Assembly: GCA_965112735.1 (NCBI GenBank)
Contig: OZ218954.1
Location: forward strand, 3,906,001 to 3,970,000
DNA: 64,000 nucleotides
Direction: 5' to 3'
Source: Phaeosaccion multiseriatum
Lineage: Eukaryota; Protista; Ochrophyta, other classes
Positions 19,068 through 60,992 of this stretch are shown here, piece after piece. Position numbers and translations under genes: made by a program. Position 1 is the stretch's first letter. Each line of letters starts with the position of its first letter. Under the pieces are notes generated by a model. That model saw only the letters and a program-made list of their open reading frames with translations, was not told where the DNA came from and searched no databases.

Positions 19068-19102
<35 letters not shown>

Positions 19103-23119: not shown

Positions 23120-23175
<56 letters not shown>

Positions 23176-31436: not shown

Positions 31437-32076
31437 ATGCGTTTCTCCTTCTTCGGCACCGCCCTCCTGGCCTTCCTCGCCATCACCAACCAGGCCACCG
31501 CCAAGATCGGGGAGCCCGCCAGCGACGAGTTGAAGAAACGCGAGCTCACGGGGTCGGTCCCTGTGGCGCCCGCCCCCTGGACTTCCCCTCCCCCAACCAA
31601 GCCCGACAAGCCCGGAAAGAACGTGAGCCACGACTCCTCGAAGGGGGACAGCTACGACTGCTCCTCGGACAGCAGCAGCAGCAGCAGCAGCGGCAGCAGC
31701 AGCAGCGACTCTTCCAGCTCCGACAGCTCGAAGGGGAAGAGGGGAAAGGTGAGCTACTGACGTTTTGTTCCCCTATCCTTCCCCTACAACGTGTTGGCTC
31801 TACTCATGACCCTTTCTCTCCTCTCCTCACTCTCACTCTTCTTCGATCCCTCTCCTCTCCCCCCCTCGCTTGTCTGTCGCTTGTCTCTCGCTCGCAGAGG
31901 GGTAGGGGGAAGGGCAAGGGCAAGGACAAGGGGAGGGGCAACAAGGGCAAGGGCAAGGGTAAGGGGAGGGGCAACAAGGGCAAGGGGAAGGGGAGGGGCA
32001 AGGGCAAGGGGAAGGGGGGGGCAAGGGGAGGGGCAAGGGCAAGGGTAAGGGCAGGACGGGAAGGGGCAAATATTGA
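31437..32076 (+). CDS. Secreted Ser-rich, Lys/Gly-rich protein A (silaffin-like family)
   Basis: Exon 31437-31748: signal peptide MRFSFFGTALLAFLAITNQATA, KKREL, WTSPPPTKP, poly-Ser/Asp, SSKGKRGK. Exon from 31898: RGRGKGKGKDKG.... Paralog B suggests an end of GRGKY* at 32076; as sequenced, a G run at ~32014-32021 shifts the stop to 32119. Confidence 0.8.
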
Positions 32077-33134
32077 AGCGGAACATCGCAGCGTAGCGTA
32101 TGCTCTATTTATGGAATAAAGTTTTGGAACGAAAGTCTTTATTCCATTGGCCCTGCTCTGGGCTGGTGGTCCCTTTGTCTCAAGCTGGGAGCTGTCAGCT
32201 CAGAGCCCCACCAGCCGATGCGCAGCTCTACAGCCCACCGCCGTAACCAGATAGACTGCTTCGTGAACTGTTGAGCCCCGATGGCCCGTGCATCTCCAGA
32301 CCCTGACCCACCGGCCTGCCCGTATGGCACTAACAATCGTGACGGACAAGCTACGGACTAGAGAGGGCGGGCAGAGAAAAGTCGTGGTTCGAAAGGCGCA
32401 GACTCTTCCTTCCTACCTCTCTCTGATGCAGCGAGAGAGCCCTATGAAGCAGCCCGCCCGGGGGAGAGCCCAGAGTCAGGACAGTCGGAAGAATAGTGCT
32501 AGGAAGGAATGCCGAAAAGAGAGATTGATAAGAAGGCGAGTGGGCAGGCAGGTCCGCTCCTTGATCACTCGCACCCGAAGAGGCTCAGTGAAAGCGAAGG
32601 AGAAAGGATGCTGGCGCGTATCGCCTGGCCTTTGATTTGCAACTGTCGGGCTGGTATCGGGTGGGCGCTCACCATTGCTCTTCACCTGTACCATCGCCGC
32701 TCTATCCCTCCCACCCACGTCAGTCAACATTCGGGTGCCCCAGGAAGCAAGGCCGCCCCGTGAGCGAAAATGCCATGACCTGTGTTCGAGATTGCATTCC
32801 ACCAGAGGAGGGGCGGTCGGACGAGAGGCGGCGCGTCGAGCAGGCGGCAGCCAAAAAGCAGAAAGCAGGAAGCAGCAGCGCAGTCGAGGAGGGTACATTT
32901 GGCGGGGGAGATGCCTTCCAGGGACATGGGATGGGACAGGCACAGGCATATCTCATCACAAGGGTTTGCTTAGCCCTGTGATTCTCGAAGCCCCAACTGC
33001 CCATGACGGTGAAGCGTTATTGTTGCTGTTCAGAAAAACGAATAATTGCGGCTGATGAGCAGGAGCATAGAGGCTCAAAAACAAACTGGACGAAAGCAAA
33101 GACTACAGCTTACGTGAGAAACATCGTGAGCACC

Positions 33135-36100
33135 ATGCGTGCCTCCTTCTTCGGCACCGCCCTCCTGGCCTTCCTAGCCGTCAGCCAGGCCACCTCCGAG
33201 AACGACAAGCCCCCGAACGACGAGCGGACGGATCGTGAGGTTCCTGAAGCCAGGATGCTGAAGTCCCGGTGGAGCCGGTACTGGTCCAGCCCCACTCCCG
33301 CGCCTGTCTGGACAGGGGCTACCCCGATGCCCACCACGAAGGTTAGAGAGCCCTGCCTTGAGAGACGCCGTGCTTGTCGTGTTATGTGAAGTCCACCCAA
33401 TAGTGCTCTCCTCATGTAGCGCCCGCCTGCGGTTCCTTCCTCCTCACCTCGCTCCAATTCGCTCCGCCGTCCACAAGCCCACGGAGCCTCCTACGTACGC
33501 ACCCACGCCCGCGCCAACGTGGATGGCCCCGCCCGTGCCTACGCCCCAGCCTACTTGGACGGACGCTCCGACCCCCGCCCCGACTACGGAGGTAGGTAAC
33601 CTCAGCAAATCAGAGGAAGAAAGCGGACTTGCTGCTAGCCTCCTCTTCCCTTGCTCTGCTTCTTCCTTTCGTCGGCGTTGCTCCGCATCATTCCCGTCCT
33701 TCCTTCGCGTGCTCGCTCCTTCAGCCACAGCCCACGATGGTTCCTACGGACGCTCCGACCCCCGCCCCGACTACGGATGTAGGTAACCTCAGCAAATCAG
33801 AGGAAGAAAGCGGACTTGCTGCTAGCCTCCTCTTCCCTTGCTCTGCTTCTTCCTTTCGTCGGCGTTGCTCCGCATCATTCCCGTCCTTCCTTCGCGTTCT
33901 CGCTCCTTCACCCACAGCCCACGATGGTTCCTACGGACGCTCCGACCCCCGCCCCGACTACGGATGTAGGTAACCTCAGCAAATCAGAGGAAGAAAGCGG
34001 ACTTGCTGCTAGCCTCGCTCTTCCCTTGCTCTGCTTCTTCCTTTCGTCGGCGTTGCTCCGCATCATTCCCGTCCTTCCTTCGCGTTCTCGCTCCTTCACC
34101 CACAGCCCACGATGGTTCCTACGGACGCTCCGACCCCCGCCCCGACTACGGATGTAGGTAACCTCAGCAAATCAGAGGAAGAAAGCGGACTTGCTGCTAG
34201 CCTCGCTCTTCCCTTGCTCTGCTTCTTCCTTTCGTCGGCGTTGCTCCGCATCATTCCCGTCCTTCCTTCGCGTGCTCGCTCCTTCACCCACAGCCCACGA
34301 TGGTTCCTACGGACGCTCCTACCCCCGCGCCTACGACCAAGCCAGTCTGGACAGCCGCACCTACGCCCGCCCCCACCATGAAGGTAAGGAATCTCAGTAG
34401 TCATGGGCAGTCCGCTGTGCCAGTCGACTTCATGTGATCGGCCCGTTTGAGCTCTACGCTCCCCGCTAAGCCTCGCTCTTCCGCTGCTCTGCTCGCTCCG
34501 TGTGCGGCCCTACATCACTCCCTTGCTCGCTTCCCCACCCACAGCCCACGAGGGCTCCTACGGATGCTCCTACCCCCGCCCCGACGATGAAGGTAAGCAA
34601 TCTCAGCAGTCATCGGCAGTCCGCTGTGCCCGTCGACCTCATGTGATCGTCCCGTTTGAGCTCTACGCTCCCCGCTAAGCTCACGCGTCTCTCACCCCTT
34701 GCTCCACTTCATGTCCGCCCTTCCTTCCCTTGCTCGCTTCCCCACCCACAGCCCACGAGGGCTCCTACGGACGCACCTACCCCCGCCCCGACGATGAAGG
34801 TAAGCCATCTCAGCAGTCATGGGCAGTCTGCTGTGCCCGTCGAGCTCATGTGATCGGCCCGTTCGAGCTCTACCCTCCCCGCTAGTCCTTTTACCCCTTG
34901 CCCCACTTCATTTCTGACTTTCTTCCCTTGCTCGCTTCCCCACCCACAGCCCACGAGGGCTCCTACTGATGCACCTACTCCCGCCCCGACGATGAAGGTG
35001 AGTAATCTCAGCAGTCAGGGGCAGTCTGCTGTGCCCGTCGACCTCATGTGATCGGCCCGTTTCAGCTCTACGCTCCCCGCTGAGCCTCACGCGTCTCTTA
35101 CCCCTTGCTCCACTTCATGTCCGCCCTTCCTTCCCTTGCTCGCTTCCCCACCCACAGCCCACGAGGGCTCCTACGGACGCACCTACCCCCGCCCCGACGA
35201 TGAAGGTAAGCCATCTCAGCAGTCATGGGCAGTCTGCTGTGCCCGTCGAGCTCATGTGATCGGCCCGTTCGAGCTCTACCCTCCCCGCTAGTCCTTTTAC
35301 CCCTTGCTCCACTTCATGTCTTACTTTCTTCCCGTGCTCGCTTCCCCACCCACAGCCCACGAGGGCTCCTACGGATGCACCTACCCCCGCCCCCACCATG
35401 AAGGTAAGCAATCTCAGCAGTCGAGTGTGTACGACCGGTCTCTGTCCTACACTCCCTGCTAAGCCTCGCTACTCCGTGTGCGGCCCCGATCATTCCCGGG
35501 CTCTCTCCTTCACCCACAGCCCACTATGGCTCCTACGGAGGCACCTACTCCCGCCCCGACGATGAAGGTGAGCAATCTCAGCAGTCGCTGGTGGCGTGCT
35601 TTGCCCATCGAGCGAGTGTGTCCGACGGTGTTTGCACTGCACTCCCTGCTAAGTCTCGCTCTTCCCCTTCTCTGCTCGCTCCGTGTGCGGCCCCGCATCA
35701 TTCCCGGACTCTCTCCTTCACCCACAGCCCACGAGGGCTCCTACGGAGGCACCTACTCCCGCCCCGACGATGAAGGTGAGCAATCTCAGCAGTCGCTGGT
35801 AGCGTGCTGTGCCCATCGAGCGAGTGTGTCCGACGGTGTTTGCACTGCACTCCCTGCTAAGTCTCGCTCTTCTGCTGGTCTGCTCGCTCCGTGTGCGGCC
35901 CCGCATCATTCCCGGACTCTCTCCTTCACCCACAGCCCACGATGGCTCCTACGGAGGCACCTACTCCCGCCCCGACCATGAAGGTGAGCAATCTCAGCAG
36001 TCGAGTGTGCACGACCAGTGTTTGTACTGCACTCCCTGCTAAGTCTCGCTCTTCCGCTGGTCTGCTCGCTCCGTGTCTCGCCGCTACCCCGCATCATTCC

Positions 36101-38403
36101 CGGACTCTCTCCTTCACCCACAGCCCACGATGGCTCCTACGGAGGCACCTACTCCCGCCCCGACGATGAAGGTGAGCAATCTCAGCAGTCGAGTGTGTAC
36201 GACCAGTGTTTGTACTGCACTCCCTGCTAAGTCTCGCTCTTCCGCTGGTCTGCTCGCTCCGTGTGCGGCTTCGCATCATTCCCGGGCTTGCTCCTTCACC
36301 CACAGCCCACGATGGCTCCTACGGAGGCACCTACCCCCGCCCCGACCATGAAGGTGAGCAATCTCAGCCGTCGAGTGCGTACGACCGGTGTTTGTTGCAC
36401 TCCCTGCTAAGTCTCGCCCTTCCGCTGGTCTGCTCGCTCCGTGTGCGGCTTCGCATCATTCCCGGGCTCTCGCCTTCACCCACAGCCCACGATTGCTCCT
36501 ACGGAGGCACCTACCCCCGCCCCGACGATGAAAGTAAGCAATCTCAGCAGTCGAGTGTGCACGACCAGTGTTTGTACTGCACTCCCTGCTAAGTCTCGCT
36601 CTTCCGCTGCTCTGCTCGCTCCGTATGCGGCCCCGCGTCATTCCCGGGCTCTCTCCTTCACCCACAGCCTACGATGGCTCCTACGGAGGCACCTACCCCC
36701 GCCCCTACGAACAAGCCCGTCTGGACAGCTGCACCTACGCCCGCCCCCACCATGATGGTGAGCAATCTCAGCCGTCGAGTGTGTACGACCAGTGTTTGCA
36801 CTGCACTCCCTGCTAAGTCTCGCTCTTCCCCTGCTCTGCTCGCTCCGTGTGCGGCCCCGCATCATTCCCGGACTCTCTCCTTCACCCACAGCCCACGATG
36901 GCTCCTACGGAGGCACCTACTCCCGCCCCGACCATGAAGGTGAGCAATCTCAGCAGTCGCTGGTAGCATGCTGTGCCCATCGAGCGAGTGTGTCCGACTG
37001 GTGTTTGTACTGCACTCCCTGCTAAGTCTCGCTCTTCCGCTGCTCTGCTCGCTCCGTGTGGGGCTTCGCATCATTCCCGGACTCTCTCCTTCACCCACAG
37101 CCCACGATGGCTCCTACGGAGGCACCTACCCCCGCCCCTACGACCAAGCCCGTCTGGACAGCTGCACCTACGCCCGTCCCCACCATGAAAGTGAGCAATC
37201 TCAGCAGTCGCTGGTAGTGTGCTGTGCCCGTCGAGCGAGTGTGTACGACCGGTGTCTGTACTGCACTCCCTGCTTAGTCTCGCTCTTCCGCTGCTCTGCT
37301 CGCTCCGTGTGGGGCTTCGCATCATTCCCGGGCTTGCTCCTTCACCCACAGCCCACGATGGCTCCTACGGAGGCACCTACCCCCGCCCCGACGATGAAGG
37401 TAAGCAATCTCAGCCGTACGACGGGTGTTTGTACTGCACTCCCTGCTAAGCCTCGCTCTTCCGCTGCTCGGCTCGCTCCGTCTCTCGCCGCTGCCCCGCA
37501 TCATTCCCGGACTCTCTCCTTCACCCACAGCCCACGATGGCTCCTACGGAGGCACCTACCCCCGCCCCGACGATGAAAGTAAGCAATCTCAGCAGTCGAG
37601 TGTGTACGACCAGTGTTTGTACTGCACTCCCTGCTAAGTCTCGCCCTTCCCCTGCTCTGCTCGCTCCGTGTGCGGCCCCGATCATTCCCGGGCTCTCTCC
37701 TTCACCCACAGCCCACGATGGCTCCTACGGAGGCACCTACTCCCGCCCCGACGATGAAGGTGAGCAATCTCAGCAGTCGCTGGTAGCATGCTGTGCCCAT
37801 CGAGCGAGTGTGTCCGACTGGTGTTTGTACTGCACTCCCTGCTAAGTCTCGCTCTTCCGCTGCTCTGCTCGCTCCGTGTGGGGCTTCGCATCATTCCCGG
37901 ACTCTCTCCTTCACCCACAGCCCACGATGGCTCCTACGGAGGCACCTACCCCCGCCCCGACGATGAAGGTAAGCAATCTCAGCCGTCGAGTGCGTACGAC
38001 CGGTGTTTGTACTGCACTCCCTGCTAAGTCTCGCTCTTCCGCTGGTCTGCTCGCTCCGTGTGCGGCCCCGCATCATTCCTGGGCTCTCTCCTTCACCCAC
38101 AGCCCACGATGGCTCCTACGGAGGCACCTACCCCCGCCCCGACCATGAAGGTGAGCAATCTCAGCCGTCGAGTGCGTACGACCGGTGTTTGTTGCACTCC
38201 CTGCTAAGTCTCGCTCTTCCGCTGCTCTGCTCGCTCCGTATGCGGCCCCGCGTCATTCCCGGGCTCTCTCCTTCACCCACAGCCTACGATCGCTCCTACG
38301 GAGGCACCTACCCCCGCCCCTACGACCAAGCCCGTCTGGACAGCGGCACCTACGCCGGCCCCCTGGACTTCCCCTCCCCCGACCAAGCCCGGAAAGAAGG
38401 GGG

Positions 38404-38444
<41 letters not shown>

Positions 38445-38457
38445 TCTTCCAGCTCCG

Positions 38458-38491
<34 letters not shown>

Positions 38492-38505
38492 ATCTTCCAG
38501 GTCCG

Positions 38506-38540
<35 letters not shown>

Positions 38541-38937
38541 TCTTCCAGCTCCGACAGCAGCAGCAGCAGCAGCAGCAGCGACTCTTCCAGCTCCGACAGC
38601 TCCAAGGTACTCCACCTCCCTCCCCCCCCTCTGGCCCTCTCACTCACCCCCCTCCTCATCTCGTGCTGCATACCCGCCTCTCGCTTGCCTCCAGATTTTA
38701 CAACGAGTTGGCTCTATTCATGACCCTCTTCGCCCCTCTCCTCTCCTCTCCTCAGTCTCACTCTCCTTCATTCCCCTCCTTTTCTCCCCCTTCGCTTTTC
38801 TGCCGCTTGTCTCTCGCTCGCAGAAGGGTAGGTGCAGGGGCAAGGACAAGGACAAGGACAAGGACAAGGACAAGGACAAGGGCAAGGGGAGGGGCAAGGG
38901 CAAGGGTAAGGGCAGGGCGGGAAGGGGCAAATATTGA
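33135..38937 (+). CDS. Secreted protein B: signal peptide, RML motif, ~24 PT-repeat exons, poly-Ser/Asp, KG/KD tail
   Basis: MRASFFGTALLAFLAVSQA...EARMLKSRWSRYW. 48-bp (some 96-bp) phase-0 exons encode PTMAPTEAPTPAPTMK variants. Exon from 38283 reads WTSPPPTKPGKKGD(S)n; last exon KGRCRGKDKDKDK...GRGKY*. Confidence 0.85.
33700..38280 (+). repeat. Tandem exon+intron array, ~165-250 bp units
   Basis: Repeating cacccacag|cccacga..gctcctacgga.gc.cctac.cccgccccgacgatgaag|gt.agcaatctcagc units in three sequence subtypes. Confidence 0.95.
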
Positions 38938-40327
38938 AGCGGAACATCGCAGCGTATGTATGCTCTATTTATGGAATGAAGTATTGGAACGAAAGTCTTT
39001 ATTCCATTGGCCCTGCTCTGGGCTGGTGGCCCCTTTGTCTCGCTCTTCCAGCTGGGAGCTGTCAGCTCAGAGCCCCACCAGCCGATGCGCGCAGCTCTAC
39101 AGCCCACCGCCGTACCAGATAGACTGCTCCGTGAACTGTTGAGCCCCGATGGCCCGTGCATCTCCAGACCCTGACCCACCGGCCTGCCCTCGGGGCTGAG
39201 AGTGGCTCGCAGTATCCAAGCTCAGCAGCACCACGGATGCCAACAAGATAAGGCATATGCCGCGGCTTCCCAGGGACGCACGAAATGTATCCGAACCCTC
39301 CCGTCGTATGGCACTAACAATCGTGACGGACAATCTATGGACTAGAGAGGGCGGGCAGAGAAAAGTCGTGGTTCGAAAGGCGCAGACTCTTGAAGCAACC
39401 CGCCCGGGGGAGAGCCCAGAGTCAGAACAGTCGGAAGTGGTGCTAGGAAGGATTGCTCAGATGCTCTCAAAGAGTGATTGATAAGAAGGCGAGTGGGCAG
39501 GCAGGGCTGGGCTGCTCTCTACTCACTCGCACCTGAAAAGGCTCAGTGAACGCGAAGGAGAAAGGATGCTGGCGCGTATCGCCTGGCCTTCGATTTGCAA
39601 GTGTCGTGCGCGGGGGGGGCTGGTATCGGGTGGGCGGTCACCACTGCTCTTCACCTGTACCATCGCCCCTCTATCCCTCCCACCCACGTCAGTCAACATT
39701 TGGATGCCTCAGGAAGCAAGGCTGCCCCTTGAGCAAAAATTCCACGACTTGCGTTCGAGATTGCACTCCACCAGAGGAGGGGCGGTCGGACGAGAGGCGG
39801 CACGCCGAGCAGGCGGCAGCCAGAAAGCAGGAAGCAGGAAGCAGCGCAGCAGACATGTTTTTCGAGAGGGTAACGGGAAATTTCGCGGGGGAGACTGCCT
39901 TCCCGGGACTTGGGGTGGGACAGGTGGTAGCTTAGCCCTGTGATTCTCGAAGCCCCAACTGCCCAAGAGAATTTGGCGCGTTATTGTTGCCTTGCTGTCC
40001 AGAAACGAATAACCATGTTACGGCTGATGAGCAGGAGCATAGAGGGCACATGCCTGCTCACAAACAAACCAACACTGGACGAAAGCAAAGACTACAGCTT
40101 ACGTGAGCAACATCGTGAGCACCATGCGTGCCTCCTTCTTCGGCACCGCCCTCCTGGCCTTCCTAGCCGTCAGCCAGGCCATCTCCGAGAACGACAAGCC
40201 CCCGAACGACGAGAGGACGGACCGTGAGGTTCCTGAAGCCAGGATGCTGAAGTCCCGGTGGAGCCGGTACTGGCACTGGACCAGACCCACTCCCGCGCCT
40301 GTCTGGACAGAGGCACCCACCATGAAG
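38824..40327 (+). repeat. Segmental duplicate of 31898-33340 (last exon, 3' UTR, intergenic spacer and first exon of the next gene)
   Basis: Long colinear matches, e.g. aatattgaagcggaacatcgcagcgta, ccagaccctgacccaccggcctgccc, gcgaaggagaaaggatgctggcgcgtatcgcctggcc, and the near-identical first exon. Confidence 0.92.
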
Positions 40328-43300
40328 GTTAAGGCACCGTGCTGTTGTGATATGTAAAGTCCAGCCAATAGTGCTCTCCTCACGTAAGCCGCCGCCTGCC
40401 GTTCCTTCCTCCTCACCTCGCTCCAATTCCCGCACCAACTGCGTGTGCCTTCCCGTCCTCGCTCCGCCGTCCACAAGCCCACGGAGCCTCCCACGTACGC
40501 ACCCACGCCCGCGCCAACGTGGACGGCCCCGCCCGTGCCTACGCCCCAGCCTACTTGGACGGACGCCCCGACCCCTGCCCCGACCATGAAAGTGAGCAAT
40601 CTCAGCAGTCGCTGGTAGCATGCTGTGCCCATCGAGCGAGTGTGTACGACTGGTGTTTGTACTGCACTCCCTGCTCATTCTCTCTATTCCCTTACTCTTC
40701 ATTCTTCCCGTCCTCCCTTTTCCTCCCCATTTCCCCACCCACAGCCCACGAGGGCTCCTACGGACGCTCCCACCTCCGCTCCCACGACCAAGCCAGTGTG
40801 GACGGCCGCACCTACGCCCGCCCCCACAATGAAGGTAGCATCTTAAGCAGTCAGGGGCTGTGTGCTGTGGCCGTCGAGCTGGTGTGTACGAGCCGTCTCT
40901 GTCCTACACTCTCTACTAAGCCTCGCTCTCCTGCTACCCCACATGCATTCCCGTGCTCGCTCCTTCACTCACAGCCCACGAGGGCTCCTACGGACGCTCC
41001 TACCCCCGCCCCGACGATGAAGGTGAGCCATCTCAGCAGTCAGGGGCCGTGTGCTGTGCCCGTCGAGCTCATGTGATCGGCCCGTTTGAGCTCTACGCCC
41101 CCCCGAAGCCTCGCGTTTCCCTAACTCTTGCTCCATTTCATTTCGATCCTTCCTTACCTTGCTCGCTTCGCCACCCACAGCCCACGAGGGCTCCTACGGA
41201 TGCACCTACGCCCGCCCCGACGATGAAGGTGAGCCATCTCAGCAGTAATGGGCAGTCCACCGTGCCCGTCGACCTCATGTGATCGGCCCGTTTGAGCTCT
41301 ACGCCCCCCCGAAGCCTCGCGTTTCCCTAACTCTTGCTCCACTTCATGTCCGTCCTTCCTTCCCTTGCTTGCTTCCCCACCCACAGCCCACGAGGGCTCC
41401 TACGGACGCTCCTACCCCCGCTCCCACGACCAAGCCAGTCTGGACACCCGCACCTACGCCCGCCCCCACCATGAAGGTGAGCCATCTCAGCAGTCATGGG
41501 CAGTCCGCCGTGCCCGTCGACCTCATGTGATCGGCCCGTTTGAGCTCTACGCTCCCCGCTAAGCCTCACGCGTCTCTTACCCCTTGCTCCACTTCATGTC
41601 CGTCCTTCCTTCCCTTGCTCACTTCCCCACCCACAGCCCACGAGGGCTCCTACGGATGCACCTACCCCCGCCCCGACGATGAAGGTGAGTAATCTCAGCA
41701 GTCATGGGCAGTCTGCTGTGCCCGTCGAGCTCATGTGATCGGCCCGTTTCAGCTCTACGCTCCCCGCTAAGCCTCACGCGTCTCTTACTCCTTGCTCCAC
41801 TTCATGTCCGCCCTACCTTCCCGTGCTCGCTCCTCCACTCACAGCCCACGAGGGCTCCTACGGACGCTCCTACCCCCGCTCCTACGACCAAGCCAGTCTG
41901 GACAGCAGCACCTACCCCCGCCCCGACGATGAAGGTGAGCCATCTCAGCAGTCAGGGGCCGGGTGTTGTGCCCGTCGAGCTCATGTGATCGGCCCGTTTG
42001 AGCTCTACGCTCCCCGCTAAGCCTCACGCGTCTCGTACCCCTTGCTCCACTTCATGTCCATTCTTCCTTCCCTTGCTCGCTTCCCCACCCACAGCCCACG
42101 AGGGCTCCTACGGATGCACCTACCCCCGCCCCGACGATGAAGGTAAGCCATCTCAGCAGTCATGGGCAGTCTGCTGTGCCCGTCGACCTCATGTGATCGG
42201 CCCGTTTGAGCTCTACGCTCCCCGCTAAGCCTCACGCGTCTCCTACCCCTTCCGTCCTTCCTTCTCCTGCTCGCTTCCCCACCCACAGCCCACGAGGGCT
42301 CCTACGGATGCACCTACGTTCGCCCCCACCATGAAGGTGAGCAATCTCAGCAGTCAGGGGCAGTCTGCTGTGCCCGTCGACCTCATGTGATCGGCCCGTT
42401 TCAGCTCTACGCTCCCCGCTAAGCCTCACGCGTCTCTTACCCCTTACTCCATCTCATGTCCGCCCTTCCTTCCCGTGCTCGCTCCTTCACTCACAGCCCA
42501 CGAGGGCTCCTACGGACGCTCCTACCCCCGCTCCCACGACCAAGCCAGTCTGGACAGCGGCACCTACGCCCGCCCCCACCATGAAGGTAAGCAATCTCAG
42601 CCGTGAGGGGGAAAGCTCCCTCCATGCCATTCCCGTCCTTTCCGGCTCGCTCCTTCCTCCTCCCCTCACCCCACTTGCCCTTCCCTCTTCTTCCTCCCCT
42701 CCCCCACTCTCTCTCCCTCCCCCAACCACTCCAAAGCCCACGCCTCAGCCTGTGTGGACAGCGGCACCTACGTCCGTCAGCAAGGATTCCTCGGACAGCA
42801 AGGATTCCTCCAAGGACAAGTCCAAGGGAAAGAAGCATCGCAAGAGAAAGGTCTGTTCTCCTCTCGCTTTTCTTGATTGTGTCTAGATTGTCACTCACCC
42901 ACCTCCTACTTCTCTTTCACTCTCTCTCACTTTGTCATCAGAACAAGAAGGGAAAGAAGCATCGCAAAAGAAAGGTGTGTTCCTTCTATCCTCTCGCTTT
43001 TCTTGATTGTGTCTAGATTGTCACTCACCCACCTCCTACTTCTCTTTCACTCTCTCTCACTTTGTCATCAGAACAAGAAGGGAAAGAAGCATCGCAAAAG
43101 AAAGGTGTGTTCCTTCTATCCTCTCGCTTTTCTTGATTGTGTCTAGATTGTCACTCACCCACCTCCTACTTCTCTTTCACTCTCTCTCACTTTGTCATCA
43201 GAACAAGAAGGGAAAGAAGCATCGCAAAAGAAAGGTCTGTTCCGCCTCTTCCTTCTATCCTCTCTCTGTCATATTCTCACAGGTCTTACTCACACACCTC

Positions 43301-43482
43301 CCTCTCTTGTTGCTTTCACTCACAGAAGGGCGGCAAGGGAAAAGGAAGGGTACGTTGTGCCTGCCATGCGTCTCTCTGTATCTCTCTCACCGCTTTTCAC
43401 TCACGCACCTCCCTCTCTTCGCTCCGCTCTTGTCGCTTGTCACTCACAGAAGGGCGGCAAGGGAAAGGGAAAATGGTGGTGA
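40124..43482 (+). CDS. Secreted protein C: same N-terminus as B, ~10 PT exons, SKDSSDSKDSSKDKSKGKKHRKRK, three NKKGKKHRKRK exons, KGGKGKGR, KGGKGKGKWW*
   Basis: ATG at 40124; AG/GT-bounded phase-0 exons; TGA at 43480-43482. Confidence 0.85.
42825..43235 (+). repeat. 130-bp tandem repeat (33-nt NKKGKKHRKRK exon plus intron) x3
   Basis: Near-identical units tttgtcatcag|aacaagaagggaaagaagcatcgcaaaagaaag|gt. Confidence 0.95.
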
Positions 43483-43891: not shown

Positions 43892-43928
43892 ATGCGCTTC
43901 TCCTTCTTCGGCACCGCCCTCCTGGCCT
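43892..43928 (+). pseudogene. Truncated family member D (signal peptide only: MRFSFFGTALLA)
   Basis: atgcgcttctccttcttcggcaccgccctcctggcctt is identical to the start of gene F; homology stops abruptly. The upstream region matches that of gene F. Confidence 0.85.
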
Positions 43929-45665: not shown

Positions 45666-48600
45666 ATGAGATCTTTCGTCGGTGCCCTGCTGCTCAGCAG
45701 CAGTGGCTTCGTCTTTCAGGTGCGTGTTGTGCAAGGCAAAGGCGGCGAAGCGATGGTTAGATTTATGTGGATTCAAGTGAGAGATGTCCTGGCCTCCCTG
45801 CGGCGTCCTTTTGCACCCACCCGGCCGCTCCTTCTTCTCCCGCTTCTTCCGTGGTATCTTCCAGCCCCTCGGGGCGGCTGGCGGCTGGGCACGCCGACTT
45901 GCGAACGAGGGCTTGTGCCTTGCTTGCGCAGTCACCCAAAGTAATCTACGACGCCTTCGCTCCTTTTGCTGCTCCTCTCCGCCTCTTTCTTCCTGTTTCC
46001 TACCCCGCATCTACTCGCGCTCAGCTCGCGTCGGCGGCGGGCGGCACTGCCGCCGTCGTGGAACGAGCTCTACAGTCTGAACAAGACTGCTCTGCCCTCT
46101 GCCTTGGGGTGAACGCTGCGGAGCCCTGCTTTGTGGATCCTTCCTGCGCAAGTGGAGGTAAAGGGGAAAATTGTATCCCCACTTCTTCATATAAGCCATG
46201 CCCCTCTCGGCCCGCCTGCTCCTTCTCCTCAGCAGCAGCAGCCATCACTGCTAATATCCAGAGTGCGAAGCTGCTGAGACCTTCCTCCGTGACCTGACTG
46301 TCCTCCCCTCCCCTTTCCTGCTGCTCTCGCCCTGCCTAAATGCACATCCATAGGCATCGGGTGCAACGCTGCGGGACTTGGGACGGAATGTAGATTCTGC
46401 GGCTTCAGCATCTTTGACCCTTGCCCGGCAGCTGACGCATCGACGGGAGTCCCCTCCGCGGCACCTCCTTCTCCTGCGTCACCGACAATCCCTCCGAGTA
46501 TCACCACCATGTCTCCTTCTTCTCCGGCAACAACCCCTCCGAGCAGCGCAGGAGGAGACAGTTGCTCAGTACTCTGTCGGCAGGGGAATCCGGCGGAGCC
46601 CTGCTTCCTTGACCCCTCCTGTACAAGTGGCGGTACGTGACGTCATCACTACGCCAGCACCAGCCCAGATATCCGCCAGTCACTGCCTGCTGCTGCCCTT
46701 GCTTCCTTCTCCCTCTAAGGCCTGACCTTCCCACCCTCCCCGCCCCTCCCGTGTCGTGCTGCTCTCCCTTTCCCTAAATGCGCATCCACAGGCATCGGGT
46801 GCAATGCACGGGGCTTGGGAAGGGAGTGTAGGTTTTGTGGATTCAGCATCTTTGATCCGTGCCCAGACGACTCATCTTCGACCTCCCCTCCGACGCCCAC
46901 TTCCGTGCCCGCCGCACCCACCACGCCTTCTGCTCCTGCGCCGACAAGAGTCCCAAGCAATGCAACAGGAGGAGGAGGAGGAGTCGACGACGCCTGCTCT
47001 GCCCGCTGTCACTCCAGCCAACCATGCTTCCTGGATCCTCTGTGCCTGGACTGCGCTAGAGACCCTCGCTCTTGTAAGTAGTAGATTGTACGTCTCCCCC
47101 CGCCGCCGCCATCCTGTTTGTGTGTCTTCTCACCTCACCATCGTTCTCATCATGTAAATGAGCGCTGCTCACCTCCTCTCTCATGATCATCGTCATCGCT
47201 CTCCCTCCCCCTACCCGCCTTCTCTTGATTCTCTCTAATGACCATAGGCATCGGGTGCAATGCACGAGGATTGGGACAAGAGTGTAGATTCTGTAACTTC
47301 TCCTTCTTCCCGGACTGCCCAGCGGTCGCCAACACGGTGACCCCGACATTGCCACCGACACCAGCTCCAGTGGCCATGGCACCCACTCAGGTTTGAAGCG
47401 AATCCTCTCCGCCCTGGGCTCTGGTCTCCCTTGCATTGCATATTGTCTCCTTTCCTCTCTCCTTTTGTTTCCAGTATACCCTCCACTTCAGCATCTTTGA
47501 TCCTTGCCCAGCAGACGATGACGCATCCTCTCAGGCATGTATTCATTCCATGGTACCTTTTTTTGCTTTGCCTCTGACGGGTAGCGCATGCATCCATCAC
47601 ACTCCCATTGTCTGCTCTCCCGCTGTCCGGCATCGTCTCTCCCTCAGGCCCCAACCACCATCGCTCCAACCACCACCCCTCCGACCCCCGCACCAGCAGC
47701 GGCAGCAAGCCCTGACACCACGATGGTACCCACCCCCGCGCCCTCGACTTCCGCGCCGACTGCTGCTATGACTATGGTATGTGACATGACGCCGTGTACT
47801 CCTGTATTGTCCCTCGGGCTTTGGTGTTAGCTCCTCTTGAGCACCTTTGATCCTTGCCCGGCAGACGATGACGCTCCACTCAGGCATGTATTCATTCCAT
47901 GGTACCTTCTCTTGCTGTGTATCTGACTAGTAGCGCATGCATCCATCATACTCCCATCGTCTGCTCTCCCGCTGTCCGGCATCGTCTCTCCCCCAGGCCC
48001 CAACCACCGTCGCTCCAACCACCACCCCTCCAACCCCCGCGCCCTCGACTTTGACTCCAACTGATGCGCCGACTACGGTAAGTGACATGACGCGGTGCAC
48101 TCCTGTGCTGTCCCTCAGGCTTCGGTTAGCATGCATTCATCATACTGCCATTGTCTGCTCTCCCGCTGTCCGGCATCGTCTCTCCCTCAGGCCCCAACCA
48201 CTGTCGCTCCAACCACCATCCCTCCGACCCCCGCGCCCTCGACTTTAACTCCGACTGATGCTCCGACTACGGTAAGTGACATGACGCGGTGCACTCCTGT
48301 GTTGTCCCTCGGGCTTGGTTGGCTCCACTTTAGCATCTGTGATCCTTGCCCGGCAGATGATGTCTCCTCCTCTGATGTCTCCTCCTCTTAGGCATGTATT
48401 GATTCCGTGGTGCCTTTTCTTGCTGTGCCTCGACTGTTAACGCATGCCTCCATCATACTGCCATTGTCTGCTCTCCCGCTGTCCGGCATCTTCTCTCCCT
48501 CAGGCCCCAACCACTGTCGCTCCAACCACCATCCCTCCGACCCCCGCGCCCTCGACATCAACTCCGACTGATGCTCCGACTACGGTAAGTGACATGACGC

Positions 48601-51600
48601 GGTGCACTCCTGTGTTGTCCCTCGGGTTTTGGTTGGCTCAACTTTAGCATCCGTGATCCTTGCCCGGCAGACGATAGTCTCCTCCTCTCAGGCATGTACT
48701 GATTCCGTGGTGCCTTTTCTTGCTGTGCCTCTGACTGGTAACGCATGCCTCCATCATACTGCCATTGTCTGCTCTCCCGCTGTCCGGCATCGTTTCTCCC
48801 TCAGGCCCCAACCACTGTCGCTCCAACCACCATCCCTCCGACCCCCGCGCCCTCGACATCAACTCCGACTAATGCTCCGACCACGGTAAGTGACATGACG
48901 CGGTGCACTCCTGTACTGTCCCTCGGGCTTTGGTTGGCTCCACTTTAGCATCTGTGATCCTTGCCCGGCAGACGATAGTCTCCTCCTCTCAGGCATGTAT
49001 TCATTCCATGGTACCTTCTCTTGCTGTGTATCTGACTAGTAGCGCATGCATCCATCATACTGCCGTTGTCTGCCCTCCCACTGTCTGGCATCGTCTCTCC
49101 CTCAGGCCCCAACCACTGTCGCTCCAACCACCACCCCTCCGACCCCCGCGCCCTCGACATCAACTCCGACTGATGCTCCGACCACGGTAAGTGACATGAC
49201 GCGGTGCACTCCTGTGTTGTCCCTCGGGCTTTGGTTGGCTCCACTTTAGCATCTGTGATCCTTGCCCGGCAGACGATATGTCTCCTCCTCTCAGGCATGT
49301 ATTCATTCCGTGGTGCCTTTTTTTGCTGTGCCTCTGACTGGTATTGCGTGCATCCATCATACTGCCATCGTCTGCTCTCCCGCTGTCCGGCATCGGCTCT
49401 CCTTCAGGCCCCAACCACCGTCGCTCCAACCACCATCCCTCCCACCCCCGCGCCCTCGACATCAGCTCCGACGGATGCTCCGACCACGGTAAGTGACATG
49501 ACGCGGTGCACTCCTCTGTTGACTCTTGGGGGCTTTGGTTGGCTCCTCTTTAGCATCTGTGATCCTTGCCCGCAGACGATGTCTCCTCCTCTCAGGCATG
49601 CATTCATTCCGTGGTACCTCATCTTGCTGTGCCTCTGACTGGTAACGCTTCCTTCCTATTACTCCCATCGTCTGCTCTCCCGCTGTCCGGCATCGTCTCT
49701 CCCTCAGGCCCCAACCACTGTCGCTCCAACCACCACCCCTCCGACCCCCGCGCCCTCGACATCAACTCCGACTGATGCTCCGACCACGGTAAGTGATATG
49801 ACGCGCTGTCCCTCGGATTTTGGTTTCCTCCAATGATGTGCCCTCGCAGGTACTTGGCAATCACGCTCCTGAAGCTCACGTCGCACACACGCCCACTCCC
49901 TGCTTTCTGTTCTGTTTTTTGTTTGTTCTGCTCGCATTCGCTTTCGCATTCGCATTCGTTCTCTGTCCATCCCCTCCCTCAGCCGGTGGCGGTTACCCCC
50001 CGTGTCACGGTCCCTTTTGAGGCCACCATCCAAAGCCTCGTCGTACCCCTCCGACACGCTCGCAGACGCCGTCTTGCCGCCGGAGACGAGGCGGACTCCG
50101 CACTCAGTGCGCAAGTGCTCAGCATTATCGTCGCCGCTGTGGACTTTGTCGCTCGTACTACCGTCTCCAATAGCGCTTCCGCCTCCGGCGTTGTGGAGGG
50201 CTCCTTCTCCATGATTGAGCTGCCGGACGAGGACGAGAACGTCGTCTCCTACGCCACATCTGCCACCACCTTCTACGACGTTACAGCAGAGGAGGAGCTA
50301 GACACCGAGGCTTTTGCCACGCTCGTGTCAGCGGCCGCACGCACGGCTGTGGAGGGAATTATTGCTACGTTAGCCAACCTCGACATCATCGACGGCGTCG
50401 AAGAGCCCCCTACAGACACCGCCTCTCCTGCGTCGACACCGACCACCGTGCCTTCAACCCCAGCTCTGACGTGTGTAAGTAGCCGTCAATGTCCATCAGG
50501 CCTCTTCTGCGTGGAGGGGATGTGCAGCGAGTGTCTCGTGGAGGGAGCGGAGTGCTCCGCATCCTCCTACAGCACCTCAGCTTGCTGCGGTAACGTCGCC
50601 TTCTCCGATGTTGGAGCTAGCGGCTTCTGCATCGACCAGGAGGACGACAGCACCGCTGCCACCCCCTTCACTGGCATATGCTCGCCGAGGTACGCTGTTG
50701 AGGGGGAGCGCTGCGCGGGAGATGTCTTGGATCGGTACGGGAGCTCCTGTGGCAGTGGTCTGGTCTGCACCGAGGGAAGATGCACTCAAGGAGGGGCGGT
50801 GGGGGAGCCCTGCTCGGAAGGGGGTGCCGCAAGCTCCTGTGGGAGTGACCTCCGCTGTGTGAAAGCCACGTGTACTGCCAAAGCAGTGGAGGGGGATGAG
50901 TGCTTCGATGGTCTCACTTGCGGCAGTGGCCTCATCTGCTCTTGGGGCAAGTGCACCCTCCCAAGCGCAGCGGGTGAGCGCTGCTCGCCGTTTAGCGCTC
51001 CGTATAGAACGGTGGGGCACAACAGCGCTTGCGGACCAGACCTGTACTGTGCGGACGGGATCTGCGGCGCGTGCGTCGAGAATGGAGGGCAATGCTCGGT
51101 TAGCCCCACGGGCTGGTACTCGTCCGTGTGCTGTGGTGACGTGACCGAGGGACAGGGCGCGGGTGGCTTCTGCATCGCCGGGGTGTGCTCATCGACGTAT
51201 ACTCAGGAGGGGGAGCCCTGCGAGGGGATTGACGACCAGAATTCCTGCAGCGGTGACCTCGTCTGCGTCGAGGGCAGTTGCATTGCCCCAGGAGGTGATG
51301 GAGCGGACTGCCAGGGAGACCTCACCAGCAACACGTGCGGGCGAGGGCTACACTGTGTGGAGGGGACCTGCACGGCCTGCATCGAGAATGGAGCACAGTG
51401 CTTGACTGAGACTTGGGCCAACTCAGCTTGCTGTGGCGATGTGTCCCCCTCTGGAGCGGGTGGCTTCTGTCTTTACGAGGAAGGCGCGTCCCGCATTAGC
51501 GAGCCACCCTTTATGGGCACTTGCTCATCTACATTCGGTGGGCTGGGAGACTCCTGCCTAGCAGCTGAGTTCGAAGGAAATGAGTCGTTGAGTTCCTGTG

Positions 51601-53423
51601 GCGGTGATCTGGTCTGTATCGAAGGGACATGCCGCGCGTGCATCGAGGAGGGAGCGGAGTGCTCGGCAAACTTGTTCAGCAGCTCAGCTTGCTGTGGCGA
51701 AGGAGCCTCTCCGGGCTTTTGCATCGACGAGGACAATCCCACGTCTGGCCGAAGCACCTACAGCTTTACCAGTAGTACCCCCGCCTTCTTCACTGGCATA
51801 TGCTCGTCGAGGCCTGGTCAGGACGGGGAGAGCTGCGCAGGAGGTGTGGGCGTCAACTCCTGTGCCCCAGGCCTCTTCTGCATCGAAGGCACCTGCAGCG
51901 GCTGCCTTATGGAGGGGGCACAGTGCTCCACATCTACCTCAGGCGACTTGCGCGACACCATTTGCTGTAGCAATGTTGCCCACCCGTTACCCTTCGCGGG
52001 TGGCTTGTGCATCAAAATGGACGATGAGGACACCGGCAACGGGCTTGAGACACCCACAGGCAACGGGTTTTGGGCAGATGTAGGCACTTGCTCTCCGACC
52101 TTTGGTCAGGAGGGTGAACGCTGTATGACAAACTCTGATGATGGAGACTCCTGTGGCCTCGGACTCTTCTGCATCGAGGGTACGTGCAGCGAACCTGGAG
52201 GTGCCGGTGACTCTTGCGTAACCACCTTCGACGGAGACTCCTGTGCCCCAGGCTTCTTCTGTAACGAGAGGACGTGCAGCGAGTGCCTCATGGAGGGAGC
52301 GGAGTGCGCAGCATCCTTCTACACCATCTCAGCTTGCTGTGGTGACGTGAGCTCCGTTGGAGCTGGTGGCTTCTGTATCTCGGGCAGTTGCTCAGCAAGT
52401 CGTGGCCAAGAAGGGGAGAGCTGCGCGGGAAGTGTGGAAAACAGCTCCTGTGCCTCGGGCCTCTTGTGCGTGGAGGGTAGCTGCGCTGCACCAGGAGGTA
52501 TTGGTGAGAAGTGCGACGGGCCCGAACTTGACCCCTTTCTCAATTCGTGCGAGGGAGTACTCCTCTGTATCGAGGGGACGTGCAGCGAGTGCCTCGTGGA
52601 GGGGACGGAGTGCTCAGCATCCTTCTACAGCGAATCAGCTTGCTGTGGTGACGTGAGCCCCCTTGGAGGTGGCGGCTTCTGCATTGGCGACGACGACTTT
52701 GGCACATCCACCACCCCCTCCTCCACAAGCACTTGCTTGGCGAGTCGTGGCCAAAACGGGGAGCGCTGCTCGGCAGATGGAGATGACAGTTTCAACAGCT
52801 CCTGTGTCGAAGGCCTCTTTTGCGTGGAGGGCAGCTGCGCTGGACCAGGAGGTATTGGCGACAGGTGCGATGGGCCCGAATTTGATGCCACTATCAACAC
52901 GTGCGAGGAAGGCCTCTTTTGCGTGGAGCGTAGCTGCGCTGCACCAGGAGGTATTGGTGAGAAGTGCGAGGGGCCCGAACTTAATGCCCTTCGCAATTCG
53001 TGCGAGGGAGTACTCCTCTGTATCGAGGGGACGTGCAGCGAGTGCCTCGTGGAGGGGGCGGAGTGCTCGGCATCCTTCTACACCAACTCAGCTTGCTGTG
53101 GTGACGTGAGCCCCCTTGGAGGTGGCGGCTTCTGCATCGGCGACGACGACTTTAGCACATCCACCGCCCCCTCCTCCACAAGCACTTGCTCGGCGAGTCG
53201 TGGCCAAAACGGGGAGCGCTGCTCGGCAGATGGAGATGACAGTTTCAACAGCTCCTGTGTCGAAGGCCTCTTTTGCGTGGAGGGCAGCTGCGCTGGACCA
53301 GGAGGTATTGGCGACAGGTGCGATGGGCCCGGATTTGGGCCCGACCTTGACCCCACTCTCAATACATGCGAGGGAGTACTCCTCTGCATCGAGGGGACGT
53401 GCCTGAGCCTTTTTTCTGAGTGA
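45666..53423 (+). CDS. Very large secreted protein G: signal peptide, ERAL, three C..DP.C..GIGCNAxGxGxECRFCxF..(F)..CP modules, ~8 PT exons, long Cys-rich repeat exon
   Basis: Exon 45666-45719 MRSFVGALLLSSSGFVFQ; exons from 46025, 46354, 46792 and 47248 carry the CRFCGF modules. 81-nt APTTVAPTTxPPTPAPSTxTPTDAPTT exons at 47.6-49.8 kb. Final exon 49983-53423 has many GExC...SCxxGLxCxEGxC and CxxEGAECS...SACCG...GGFCI repeats. Confidence 0.82.
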
Positions 53424-58670: not shown

Positions 58671-59040
58671 TCCTCAGGCTACATCTCAGAGGAATTGGCA
58701 AAGTCTGATGGCGGTGTGCTGATGGCGGTGAACTTGGGGGGGGGGGCAACTCCGAGGGTGCTGTCATGGTAGAAGAGCAGGCCAGCCAGCCAGCCAGCCA
58801 GCCAAGGGAGGCCTTAGGGGGGGGGGGAGGCTTCAATTCATTAATTTTAAAATATGCACCGCTCTGTGCGGAGGACGGATAGTATGGGATGGAATGGAAT
58901 AGAATGGAATAGAATGGGAGATGGAGCCTGTTGGGTATGTATGTAGGATGGACTGTATATAGCTGTATCTCAGTGATTGTGGTACATAATCTATTCATAG
59001 TTAATTTAAGCTCTCATCGCGCTCTCTTCCGGGGGAAGAC

Positions 59041-59776
59041 CTACGTATGAGTGAGCACCTCCTTCGTGAATGGACTCGCTTCGCTTCCTCTCGCTTGCGC
59101 ACCTCCTTCTTCTCCTTCACTCTCTCTCGCTTTGTCCCTCACAGAAGGGCGGCAAGGGAAAGAGAAAGTCGGCCCCCCCGCGGGGCTTCTCGGGCCCCCG
59201 ATAAGCAGAAGCCTGAGGCGGCCAGCGGCCGAAAGCAAGAAGCCCGGGGCTGGCCTGCGGCCAGAAGCCTGCAGGAAAGTAGCGAGAAGCCCAAGTTTCC
59301 CATTTTTTTTCCCAGCCTGAGAAGCCCGAAGCCCAGACCTCTGGCCTGCGGCCAGAAGCCCGAAGCCTAGAGGGGGCTATGGCCTAGAAGCCCGGAGCCC
59401 GAGAAGCCCCGCGGGGGGCCGAAGAAAGGTGTGTTGCTACATCCCTGCGGTACTCCACTCGCTCGCTTGTCTTGCTGGTCTATCGCCTGTCACTCACATA
59501 CATCTCAATTCTCCCTTCTCTTCTCTCTTACGCCCCTTTCGCTTGTCCCCGCTTGTCTCTCGCAGAAGGGAAAGGCACGTCGCGCTTCTCCCCCTCTCCG
59601 TCTCTCTCTCTCACAGTTCTTACTCACACACATCCGTCTCTTCTCTCTCTTGTTGTGTTCACTCACAGAAAGGCGGCAAGGGAAAAGGAAAGGGCAGGGA
59701 TGGTGGTAAAGTGGTGAAGTCGGAGAGCCAATATCATAAAGGGGGGGGGAATAAAAGGGTTCCAGTAAGTCAGTAA
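59041..59776 (+). pseudogene. 5'-truncated family member E (only K/G tail exons: KGGKGKRK, KGK, KGGKGKGKGR...)
   Basis: Exons 59145-59168, 59566-59574 (GC donor) and from 59669 resemble the 3' exons of C. No signal-peptide exon upstream; a MITE is inserted at the first donor. Confidence 0.7.
59169..59422. mobile_element. 254-bp MITE with ~26-bp TIRs and 6-bp TSD (AGAAAG)
   Basis: Left end tcggcccccccgcggggcttctcgggc; right end gcccgagaagccccgcggggggccga. agaaag at 59163-59168 and 59423-59428; internal agaagcc repeats. Confidence 0.9.
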
Positions 59777-59967
59777 TTCTGTGAGTCCGAAGACCCAACT
59801 GCTCGAGATGCTCGGGCCCGCGCGTTGTTACTCTTTCAAAACCCCGCGTAAATCATGAAATATTGCTTTGGGGGTGGCGTTAGCTATCCAGCCATGGCCA
59901 AGAGGAGATCAGATCACAAACCAACCCGCACTCCTACAGCCTACCTCAAGACCTTCACCTGAACACC

Positions 59968-60871
59968 ATGCGCTTCTCCTTCTTCGGCACCGCCCTCCTG
60001 GCCTTCCTCGCCATCAACCAGGCCACCGCCGAGACCGCCAGCGACGAGCTAAAGACGCGCGAGGAGGCTCCCCTTCAGCCCCGAAGGCTGGGGACCTGGA
60101 CTGCCCCTCCCCCTCAGCACTCGAGCTCGCCGGACAGCTCGTCCTCTTCGTCGTCCTCCTCCGGCGGCAGCAGCAGCAGCTCCTCCTCCTCCAGCAGCTC
60201 CGACAAGGGCAAGGGCAAGAAGGGCAAGGTATACCATTTTAAAGCTTAGCGCGCTTCCTTTGTGCCCTTCTCTGCCGCTCCTCTTCTGGCATTCACATTC
60301 ACCCCTTCCCCAAATCTTCTCCCCTTCACTGACTCCTCGTTTGTCTCTCATCACAGAAGGGCGGCAAGGGAAAGGGCAAGGGAAAGGTAGGTCCTTCCCT
60401 CTTTATGTCTCTCCCCCCACCACCACACACCTTCTTTCTCCCTCTCTCGCTTGTCTTGTTGTGCTTGTCTCTCGCAGAGGGGAAAGGTACTCTGTCTCGC
60501 TTTCGCTTCATTGGTGTCCCATTCCCGCTGTCTTCACGTTCTTTGCATTTCTCCACCCCCCCCCCTCTGTTAACCCCTCCCCCTCTTGTCCCTCCTTGTC
60601 ACTCGCACACCTCTCCCGTGTCCTCCCTCTCTCGGTTGTCACTCACACAGAAGGGAGGCAAGAAGGACGGAAAGGTGGGTTACTACTTCCCCTTTGTCTT
60701 TCCCCCACCATCTTTCCTCTTTTTCGTTCCCCCCACCCCTCTCCTTCCTCACTCACACGCATTCCCATTCCCTCGCTTGTCACTCACAAGAAAAACAAAG
60801 GTGGCAAGAAGAACAAGGGCGGCAAGAAGAACGAGGGCGGCAAGGGACACAAGGGCGGAAGCAAGTGGTAG
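59968..60871 (+). CDS. Secreted Ser-rich, Lys/Gly-rich protein F (silaffin-like family) with micro-exons
   Basis: Exons 59968-60228 (signal peptide, PRRL, poly-Ser, DKGKGKKGK), 60357-60386 (KGGKGKGKGK), 60478-60486 (RGK), 60651-60674 (KGGKKDGK), 60791-60871 (KNKGGKKNKGGKKNEGGKGHKGGSKW*). Confidence 0.85.
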
Positions 60872-60992
60872 AAGGGAAATTCTAGAGGTTAACAAAGCTC
60901 TTTAAGAATGGAATGATCTATTGAAAAACACACACGTCTTTCACATTTCTTTAGTGGTGTGTTCCACGAACACTCCGCAGTCCTCTACATCC

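Follow-up and report, generated by a model that had tools for sequence, protein, structure and literature searches.

In diatoms, RXL motifs occur in the precursors of silaffins, cingulins, silacidins and frustulins, the KXXK clusters of silica proteins carry unusual lysine modifications, and tpSil3 is targeted to silica by clusters of lysine acting jointly with phosphoserines (PMC4557024). Oppositely charged proteins also assemble in the cement of the sandcastle worm, in which the Ser-dominated, phosphorylated Pc-3 and the basic Pc-1/2/4/5 coacervate (PMC4275877) and which, with the silaffins (PMC4557024), provides the precedent for assembly through charged blocks. Sorghum has Siliplant1, a basic protein made of repeats, which is secreted, precipitates silica and has been brought into connection with RXL motifs, as far as the accessible part of its preprint goes (bioRxiv 10.1101/518332). 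RxL-type cleavage soon after the signal peptide is found in oomycete RXLR effectors and Plasmodium PEXEL proteins as well (PMC11754927, PMC4740378), so that the motif is not specific to silica proteins. Here we describe genes with comparable features in a stretch of 64,000 nucleotides of Phaeosaccion multiseriatum (assembly GCA_965112735.1, contig OZ218954.1, positions 3,906,001 to 3,970,000 of the forward strand). This whole stretch is called the window, and positions are counted from its first letter.

A first-pass annotation of this DNA had proposed an undescribed, independently expanded protein family at 31437-60871, and the present analysis bears it out: there is good support for a family that has expanded in tandem, whose products are predicted to be secreted and for which no relatives were detected. 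Our preferred reading, to which we give a probability of roughly 0.5, is that the products are secreted, probably disordered matrix or cell-surface glycoproteins with oppositely charged blocks, anchored by a cationic tail.

The gene family and its organization

The window is eukaryotic DNA, with a GC content of 0.52-0.64, spliceosomal GT-AG introns, and many microsatellites and low-complexity open reading frames (ORFs). Gene models were obtained by reading the sequence and by searching for exons flanked by canonical splice signals. All modelled introns are GT-AG and phase 0 (about 50 exon boundaries), and most acceptors read (c/t)cacag. A 27-nt signal-peptide seed is present in exactly five copies, all on the + strand, against a chance expectation of 0, and the heads that it marks start with ATGs at 31437 in A, 33135 in B, 40124 in C, 43893 in D and 59968 in F. 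An alignment of the four full heads (A, B, C and F) contains 23 columns without variation (MR[FA]SFFGTALLAFLA, QA, DE..RE, P..WT). Their genes are modelled as follows.

Gene A, 31437..32119, + strand: two exons (31437-31748 and 31898-32119), 177 aa; signal peptide, pro-segment ending in REL, PWT motif, 36-aa Ser/Asp block and (G/K/R)n tail
Gene B, 33135..38937, + strand: 27 exons, 662 aa; head exon 33135-33341 with an RML motif
Gene B, rod, 33478-38150, + strand: 24 Pro/Thr/Ala exons of 48, 90 or 114 nt, with introns of 116-161 nt between them
Gene B, exon 38283-38606, + strand: ends in a 69-aa block, 83% Ser
Gene B, tail exon 38824-38937, + strand: KGRCRG(KD)6KGKGRGKGKGKGRAGRGKY and stop
Gene C, 40124..43482, + strand: 17 exons, 395 aa; head about 89% identical to exon 1 of B
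Gene C, rod, 40478-42586, + strand: 10 Pro/Thr/Ala exons
Gene C, exon 42737-42850, + strand: encodes SKDSSDSKDSSKDKSKGKKHRKRK
Gene C, micro-exons of 33 nt, 42942-42974, 43072-43104 and 43202-43234, + strand: three identical, NKKGKKHRKRK
Gene C, end of the tail, + strand: 24-nt micro-exon 43326-43349, then last exon 43450-43482, KGGKGKGKWW and stop
Gene F, 59968..60871, + strand: five exons, 134 aa
Gene F, exon 59968-60228, + strand: signal peptide, RRL motif, GTW, 28-aa block at 82% Ser
Gene F, micro-exons, + strand: 60357-60386 (KGGKGKGKGK), 60478-60486 (RGK, 9 nt) and 60651-60674 (KGGKKDGK)
Gene F, last exon 60791-60871 (81 nt), + strand: ends in KGGSKW and stop

Common to the family is a plan consisting of a signal peptide, a short RxL pro-segment, Pro/Thr/Ala repeat exons (from 0 to about 25), a Ser/Asp block and a Lys/Gly tail, the latter modelled in part on micro-exons of 9-33 nt. 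The Pro/Thr/Ala unit, PT(M/R)APT(D/E)APTPAPT(M/T)K, comprises 16 or 30 residues, each unit lying on its own exon of 48 or 90 nt, with introns of about 115-160 nt in between; B has about 25 of these units, C has about 11, and A and F have none. The domain picture first drawn for the family put no emphasis on this repeat domain, which makes up most of B (487 aa) and C (250 aa).

The regions upstream of the heads are of two types, one in A, B and C and the other in D and F, and the segment 43798-43850, just upstream of the ATG of D, recurs at 59760-59812 upstream of that of F. The duplication of flanks at a spacing of about 6.97-6.99 kb (repeat families D12 and D13), together with the homology of the A and B tails with their 3' flanks and of the tail-to-head junctions, indicates that this array of predicted secreted-protein genes expanded by tandem segmental duplication. 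Loose contig ends from the sequenced sample add one more A-like head and no fewer than two more upstream contexts, which indicates additional copies or divergent alleles elsewhere.

Coding status and selection

Taken together, genes B and C have 25 exons of 48 nt, whose mean pairwise identity is 91%, compared with 70% for the introns that follow them, and the gap persists when only pairs of one exon from B and one from C are considered (90% versus 66%). Within the repeat exons, the per-site diversity at codon positions 1, 2 and 3 is 0.019, 0.065 and 0.189, respectively, and the Pro, Thr and Ala residues are invariant while third positions vary. From the third-position bias and the conservation of exons over introns we conclude that the + strand frame is, or recently was, under purifying selection. 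The poly-Ser runs use a mixture of AGC, TCC, TCG and TCT codons, which pure slippage would not produce, and they are therefore not plain microsatellites; the Lys and Gly codons are mixed too. Antisense and other-frame ORFs were considered as real genes and rejected, because it is mainly at third codon positions of the + strand frame that the sequences vary.

Composition and processing features

All four spliced proteins have the common signal peptide, the RxL motif and the nearby Trp that had been noticed at first sight. In the N-terminus, MR[FA]SFFGTALLAFLA[IV]..QA[TI][AS], a short charged beginning leads into a hydrophobic core, and small residues make up the cleavage region. Each protein has one RxL, namely REL at residue 35 in A, RML at residue 40 in B and C, and RRL at residue 39 in F; it lies 13-19 aa beyond the predicted signal-peptide cleavage site and is followed after 3-11 residues by Trp. 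The RxL alignment column in A differs from that of B, C and F. The pro-segment had been described as acidic and as ending in RxL; the RxL is there, but the acidity is weak (net charge 0 to about -3). A plastid-targeting N-terminus is unlikely, judging by inspection, because there is neither a Phe after the predicted cleavage site nor a region resembling a transit peptide.

Blocks rich in Ser and Asp were likewise part of the first description, and they are present in A (36 aa, 64% Ser), B (69 aa, 83% Ser) and F (28 aa, 82% Ser), but C is nearly devoid of one (4% Ser), with no more than a brief SKDSSDSKDSS stretch in its place. In B and C, 75-76% of the rod residues are Pro, Ala, Ser or Thr. 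Over the entire proteins these four residues amount to 68% in B and 56% in C, and to only 33-34% in A and F. AP and TP dipeptides number 81 and 33 in B (114 in all) and 43 and 17 in C (60 in all).

The tails contain 22-45% Lys and 27-38% Gly, with an isoelectric point (pI) of 10.4-12 and a net charge of about +12 to +39. Basic tails with KxxK motifs had been described, and dense Lys clusters are indeed found in all four proteins: KxxK is counted 3 times in A, once in B, 18 times in C and 12 times in F, and there are 22-58 windows of 14 residues with at least five Lys per protein, a result that is near-automatic in tails so rich in Lys. The strings KREL (A), ARML (B and C), PRRL (F), KGGK (C and F) and KDSSKDKSKGKK, quoted in the first-pass annotation, all occur in the spliced models, as does NKKGKKHRKRK, four times in that of C. 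Trp occurs as PVWT within the Pro/Thr units and near the N-terminus, and the Lys clusters are exclusively C-terminal, with no alternation between the two. The models show no C-terminal hydrophobic or glycosylphosphatidylinositol (GPI)-like segment, and their polybasic ends read KY, WW or KW before the stop.

Search for relatives

A word-indexed protein search with residues 1-62 of A, its non-repetitive N-terminus, retrieved no relative, and a hidden Markov model (HMM) of the four N-termini gave no true match among 1.84 billion representatives of about 15 billion proteins; the two matches that it did return were rejected, as both are unrelated repeat proteins. No relative was found in a back-translated pattern scan of Joint Genome Institute (JGI) metagenomes, the only outcome of a Pfam scan of the family was a sub-threshold low-complexity match to SR-25, and an exact-string search of 8.4 million papers with literal family peptides gave no match. 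The proteins of the window itself are also missing from the protein collections searched, both by exact look-up and by the search for relatives. These blank results imply that no sampled organism has the family, and they do not thereby prove its confinement to one species.

Likeness to described proteins and possible function

We infer the function of the family from its composition alone, and the scheme that follows is conditional in its secretion, cleavage, modifications and binding partners alike. The signal peptide would direct the protein into the endoplasmic reticulum, and a pro-segment of 13-19 residues would be removed at the single RxL. The Pro/Thr/Ala rod may be O-glycosylated in a mucin- or arabinogalactan-like manner, and the Ser/Asp block would be strongly anionic if phosphorylated. 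The C-terminal Lys/Gly(/Arg/His) polycation could then bind an anionic matrix, for example polysaccharides of the sulfated or uronic type, or else silica, should the organism form it, and the oppositely charged blocks would let the molecules associate or coacervate. Each repeat forms a separate phase-0 exon-intron unit, and unequal crossing-over could for this reason alter the length of the rod and the charge of the tail.

The glycoprotein part of this reading comes from the likeness to mucins and arabinogalactan proteins, with which the family shares a signal peptide and, in B and C, domains of short tandem repeats rich in AP and TP. The threshold of at least 50% Pro+Ala+Ser+Thr used here for such proteins is reached by B and C and not by A and F. 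Lys-rich arabinogalactan proteins, a class named in PMC8658186, also have a basic Lys-rich subdomain; theirs, however, is a short internal Lys stretch, whereas the present proteins have a long terminal polycation in addition to a poly-Ser/Asp block. Further differences from arabinogalactan proteins are the missing C-terminal GPI signal and, in A and F, the missing rod. In composition, the Pro/Thr/Ala rods of B and C resemble mucins or arabinogalactan proteins no less than cingulins.

Among the ochrophytes there are lineages that make silica. The family could accordingly be read as an analogue of silaffins and cingulins, in which phosphorylated Ser blocks and modified Lys clusters would precipitate or pattern silica in scales, cysts or lorica, with the Lys clusters doubling as silica-targeting signals; we consider this unlikely, and the silica link is an analogy in composition, no feature of the locus tying the proteins to silica in preference to a usual wall or adhesive matrix. 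The facts cited in its support, on diatom RXL motifs, KXXK modification and silica targeting by Lys clusters, agree with the literature (PMC4557024). The family resembles silaffins, silacidins and cingulins in the signal peptide for the endoplasmic reticulum, in a single RxL soon after it, as in the precursors of diatom silica proteins (PMC4557024), in the low-complexity sequence rich in Ser and Lys with KxxK motifs and clusters of at least five Lys, in being zwitterionic if the Ser residues are phosphorylated, and in a fast evolution that leaves little or no sequence conservation (PMC4557024). The SKDSSDSKDSSKDKSKGKK stretch of C, in addition, mixes Ser, Asp and Lys much like silaffin peptides.

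A silaffin-like screen (Scheffel et al., quoted in PMC3478156) requires a signal peptide and, within 100 aa, a Ser content of 18% or more and a Lys content of 10% or more. It is passed by A with 74 windows, by B with 23 and by F with 35, and C has 0, its best window containing 8 Ser and 9 Lys. Since the same screen returned 89 genes in Thalassiosira pseudonana (PMC3478156), its specificity is low and passing it is weak evidence. Moreover, Ser and Lys lie largely in separate blocks rather than interspersed, the Gly/Lys tails being almost without Ser, and C has no Ser block. There is one RxL per protein in place of RxL-punctuated repeats, B and C have long Pro/Thr/Ala rods, the alternating KXXK-rich and Trp/Tyr-rich domains of cingulins are not seen, and neither the word-indexed nor the HMM search revealed similarity to any diatom protein. 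Siliplant1 is unrelated to the family in sequence and in repeat type, as judged from what the accessible part of the preprint gives. The bolder proposal that a non-diatom alga independently evolved single-chain silaffin analogues (poly-phosphoserine plus poly-Lys with an optional glycosylated spacer) that template or target silica or another mineral in scales, cysts or walls is by composition conceivable and, in our estimate, doubtful.

A self-coacervating protein of an underwater adhesive or mucilage, attaching spores, zygotes or cells, is another improbable candidate. Here a phosphoserine block and a Gly/Lys polycation would do in one chain the job that separate proteins do in tube-worm cement. 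Ser blocks with 64-83% Ser and Gly/Lys-rich tails parallel the coacervating Pc-3 and the basic Pc-1/2/4/5 (PMC4275877), both sets of proteins are repetitive and secreted (in the algal case by prediction), with Ser-dominated acidic and basic parts, and predicted secretion, tandem expansion and mucin-like neighbours fit as well. This is an analogy of composition only, with an annelid whose charges reside on separate proteins, whereas the algal family combines both in one chain; moreover, the family tails are almost without Tyr, hence no 3,4-dihydroxyphenylalanine (DOPA) chemistry. The proposal overlaps strongly with that of a matrix or cell-surface glycoprotein, from which only the substrate distinguishes it.

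Damaged copies and reliability of the models

The array was first described as four intact and two broken genes. D and E are indeed broken, but A is not fully intact, as its end is frame-shifted. Compared with B, the tail of A has 65 extra nt, and its last 37 or so codons miss the conserved frame ending in GKGRGKGKGKGR.GRGKY and stop, so that the shifted frame continues into what is 3' untranslated region in B. The shift lies at or near a run of eight G near 32015 and may therefore be an assembly error, or it may be real. The damaged copies and the insertion in one of them are the following.

Copy D, head stub, 43893..43929, + strand: 36-37 nt of coding sequence, the ATG and 12 signal-peptide codons (MRFSFFGTALLA), then unrelated sequence
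Copy E, decayed remnant, 59145..59730, + strand: tail only, without a head
Copy E, micro-exons, + strand: 59145-59168 (KGGKGKRK) and 59566-59574 (KGK, then GC in place of GT)
Insertion in E, 59169..59428: about 254 bp, with AGAAAG (6 nt) duplicated around it; lies at the donor site of the first micro-exon

At position 43930, right after the truncated codons of D, contigs from three runs of the sequenced sample have G where the assembly has A (GTACGCG versus ATACGCG); with the G variant, the breakpoint of D would gain a GT. Relative to C, the last exon of E (from 59669) contains 8 inserted nt and its stop codon is gone. In view of the upstream segment that D shares with F, the head of D and the tail of E may be the two ends of one ancestral gene, now about 15 kb apart with other secreted-protein genes between them. 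The insertion at 59169-59428 is a high-copy element, with a word depth of 11,000-28,000 compared with a few hundred in its flanks. Contigs of two runs (X1 and X4) skip it, i.e. empty-site copies exist in the same sample, so that it is polymorphic or specific to one paralogue, and it behaves like a small non-autonomous transposon. Over 55000-60999, the sample differs from the assembly at about 56 single-base sites in 6 kb and by small indels, a pattern that points to a heterozygous diploid or to haplotypes or paralogues that have diverged.

Several points weigh against the reading of the family as matrix or cell-surface glycoproteins. The signal peptide was judged by inspection only. Part of the array is decaying, two of its six copies being dead and A shifted at its end. 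The micro-exon tails are predictions from splice signals, preserved frame and conservation between paralogues: the runs that contain the locus are genomic DNA from one sample, and the four of them placed on 55000-60999 contain no spliced joints; genomic contigs run through the introns (e.g. 60230-60961) at even depth, and no joint matches a predicted intron.

A more radical view is that the genes as a whole are decaying or mis-modelled, being fast-evolving low-complexity ORFs that do little or nothing, or having Lys micro-exons that are spliced otherwise. This we hold to be quite unlikely. It would account for the two dead copies and the shifted end of A, for tails and Ser blocks that are near-microsatellite (TRF flags (GGGCAA)n and (CAG)n) and for the blank protein and metagenome searches; it sits badly, however, with the third-position bias and the conservation gap between exons and introns over 25 units and between B and C, with some 50 exon boundaries that are all AG/GT and phase 0, with the mixed Ser, Lys and Gly codons, and with same-sample contigs that show further heads elsewhere or on the other haplotype.

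As to the processing motif, the family has in common with RxLR and PEXEL proteins an RxL close to the end of the signal peptide (at most about 20 residues from its cleavage site), a motif that in those proteins is cleaved before secretion or export; the contexts KRELTG, ARMLKS and RRLGTW match neither consensus (RxLR with a downstream EER, or RxLxE/Q/D) in the fourth and fifth positions, and there is no EER and no host-targeting context. That the genes encode precursors of secreted polycationic peptides, e.g. antimicrobial or DNA- or membrane-binding ones freed by proteolysis, is very improbable: in its favour are a processing motif and tails of extreme basicity (pI up to 12, with the fourfold NKKGKKHRKRK), but amphipathic or hydrophobic character is missing, no processing sites separate the repeat units, and neither the long Pro/Thr rods nor the Ser blocks would find an explanation.

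Neighbouring genes and other features of the window

The first-pass annotation had the family clustered with other extracellular Cys-rich genes, and its neighbours are in fact Cys-rich with signal-peptide-like N-termini.

Gene G, between D and E, 45667..53423, + strand: signal-peptide-like start (MRSFVGALLLSSSGFVFQ)
Two paralogous small Cys-rich ORFs, 55301-55762 and 57339-57794, + strand: 13 Cys each in about 150 aa

Gene G contains repeated GIGCNAxGLGxECRFCGF..DPCP Cys motifs (at about 46.3-47.5 kb) and a Pro/Thr-rich array with an exon-intron period of 301 bp (at about 47.9-49.9 kb), and ends in a 1196-aa ORF with 124 Cys (10.4%) and modules such as C.EG.C..C..EGAECSAS.Y..SACCGDVS..G.GGFC. 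A Pfam search with gene G gave nothing significant, and the weak leads were DUF7107, Dickkopf_N and EB-like domains (Atlas 0.85; Pfam E-value 0.02). The two small ORFs are 95% identical over 300 nt, have hydrophobic N-termini and match no Pfam family; they probably continue into further exons.

In the scanned flanks, the only Pfam matches above the curated cut-off were a Sin3a C-terminal domain and ankyrin repeats, and an Rfam search of the window found no RNA family. A single-exon ankyrin-repeat ORF of 294 aa lies at 27410-28294 on the - strand; its exact sequence is not on record, and it has no relative at the strict cut-off of E <= 1e-10 in a collection of 5.8 billion protein clusters, which suggests a poorly sampled lineage. 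At 18690-19630 there is a long (CA/TG)n-type microsatellite, with spurious His/Thr and Cys/Val ORFs on both strands and no gene.

Significance

It is well supported that the genes form a family without relatives. The proteins would fall within the known kind of secreted low-complexity matrix proteins, and a notable trait of the models is an architecture of micro-exons and of one exon per repeat. Placing one 16-residue repeat or one Lys cluster on each phase-0 exon, down to 9 nt, would ease changes in copy number. Micro-exons of 9-33 nt are also a challenge for gene predictors, which tend to miss such sizes.

If the proteins are associated with a mineral or with silica, they would offer a second, independent molecular entry to protein-guided biosilica outside diatoms, and on the silaffin-analogue proposal mineral-binding valency would be tuned by the duplication of Lys micro-exons of 9-33 nt and spacer exons of 48 nt. 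If they are instead components of a wall or an adhesive, they would be a naturally occurring polyampholyte in one chain, of use in research on coacervates and adhesion. In either case, if the models are right, the locus would be a clear example of a matrix family in which rod length, the size of the anionic block and cationic charge can be tuned by the duplication of exon units.

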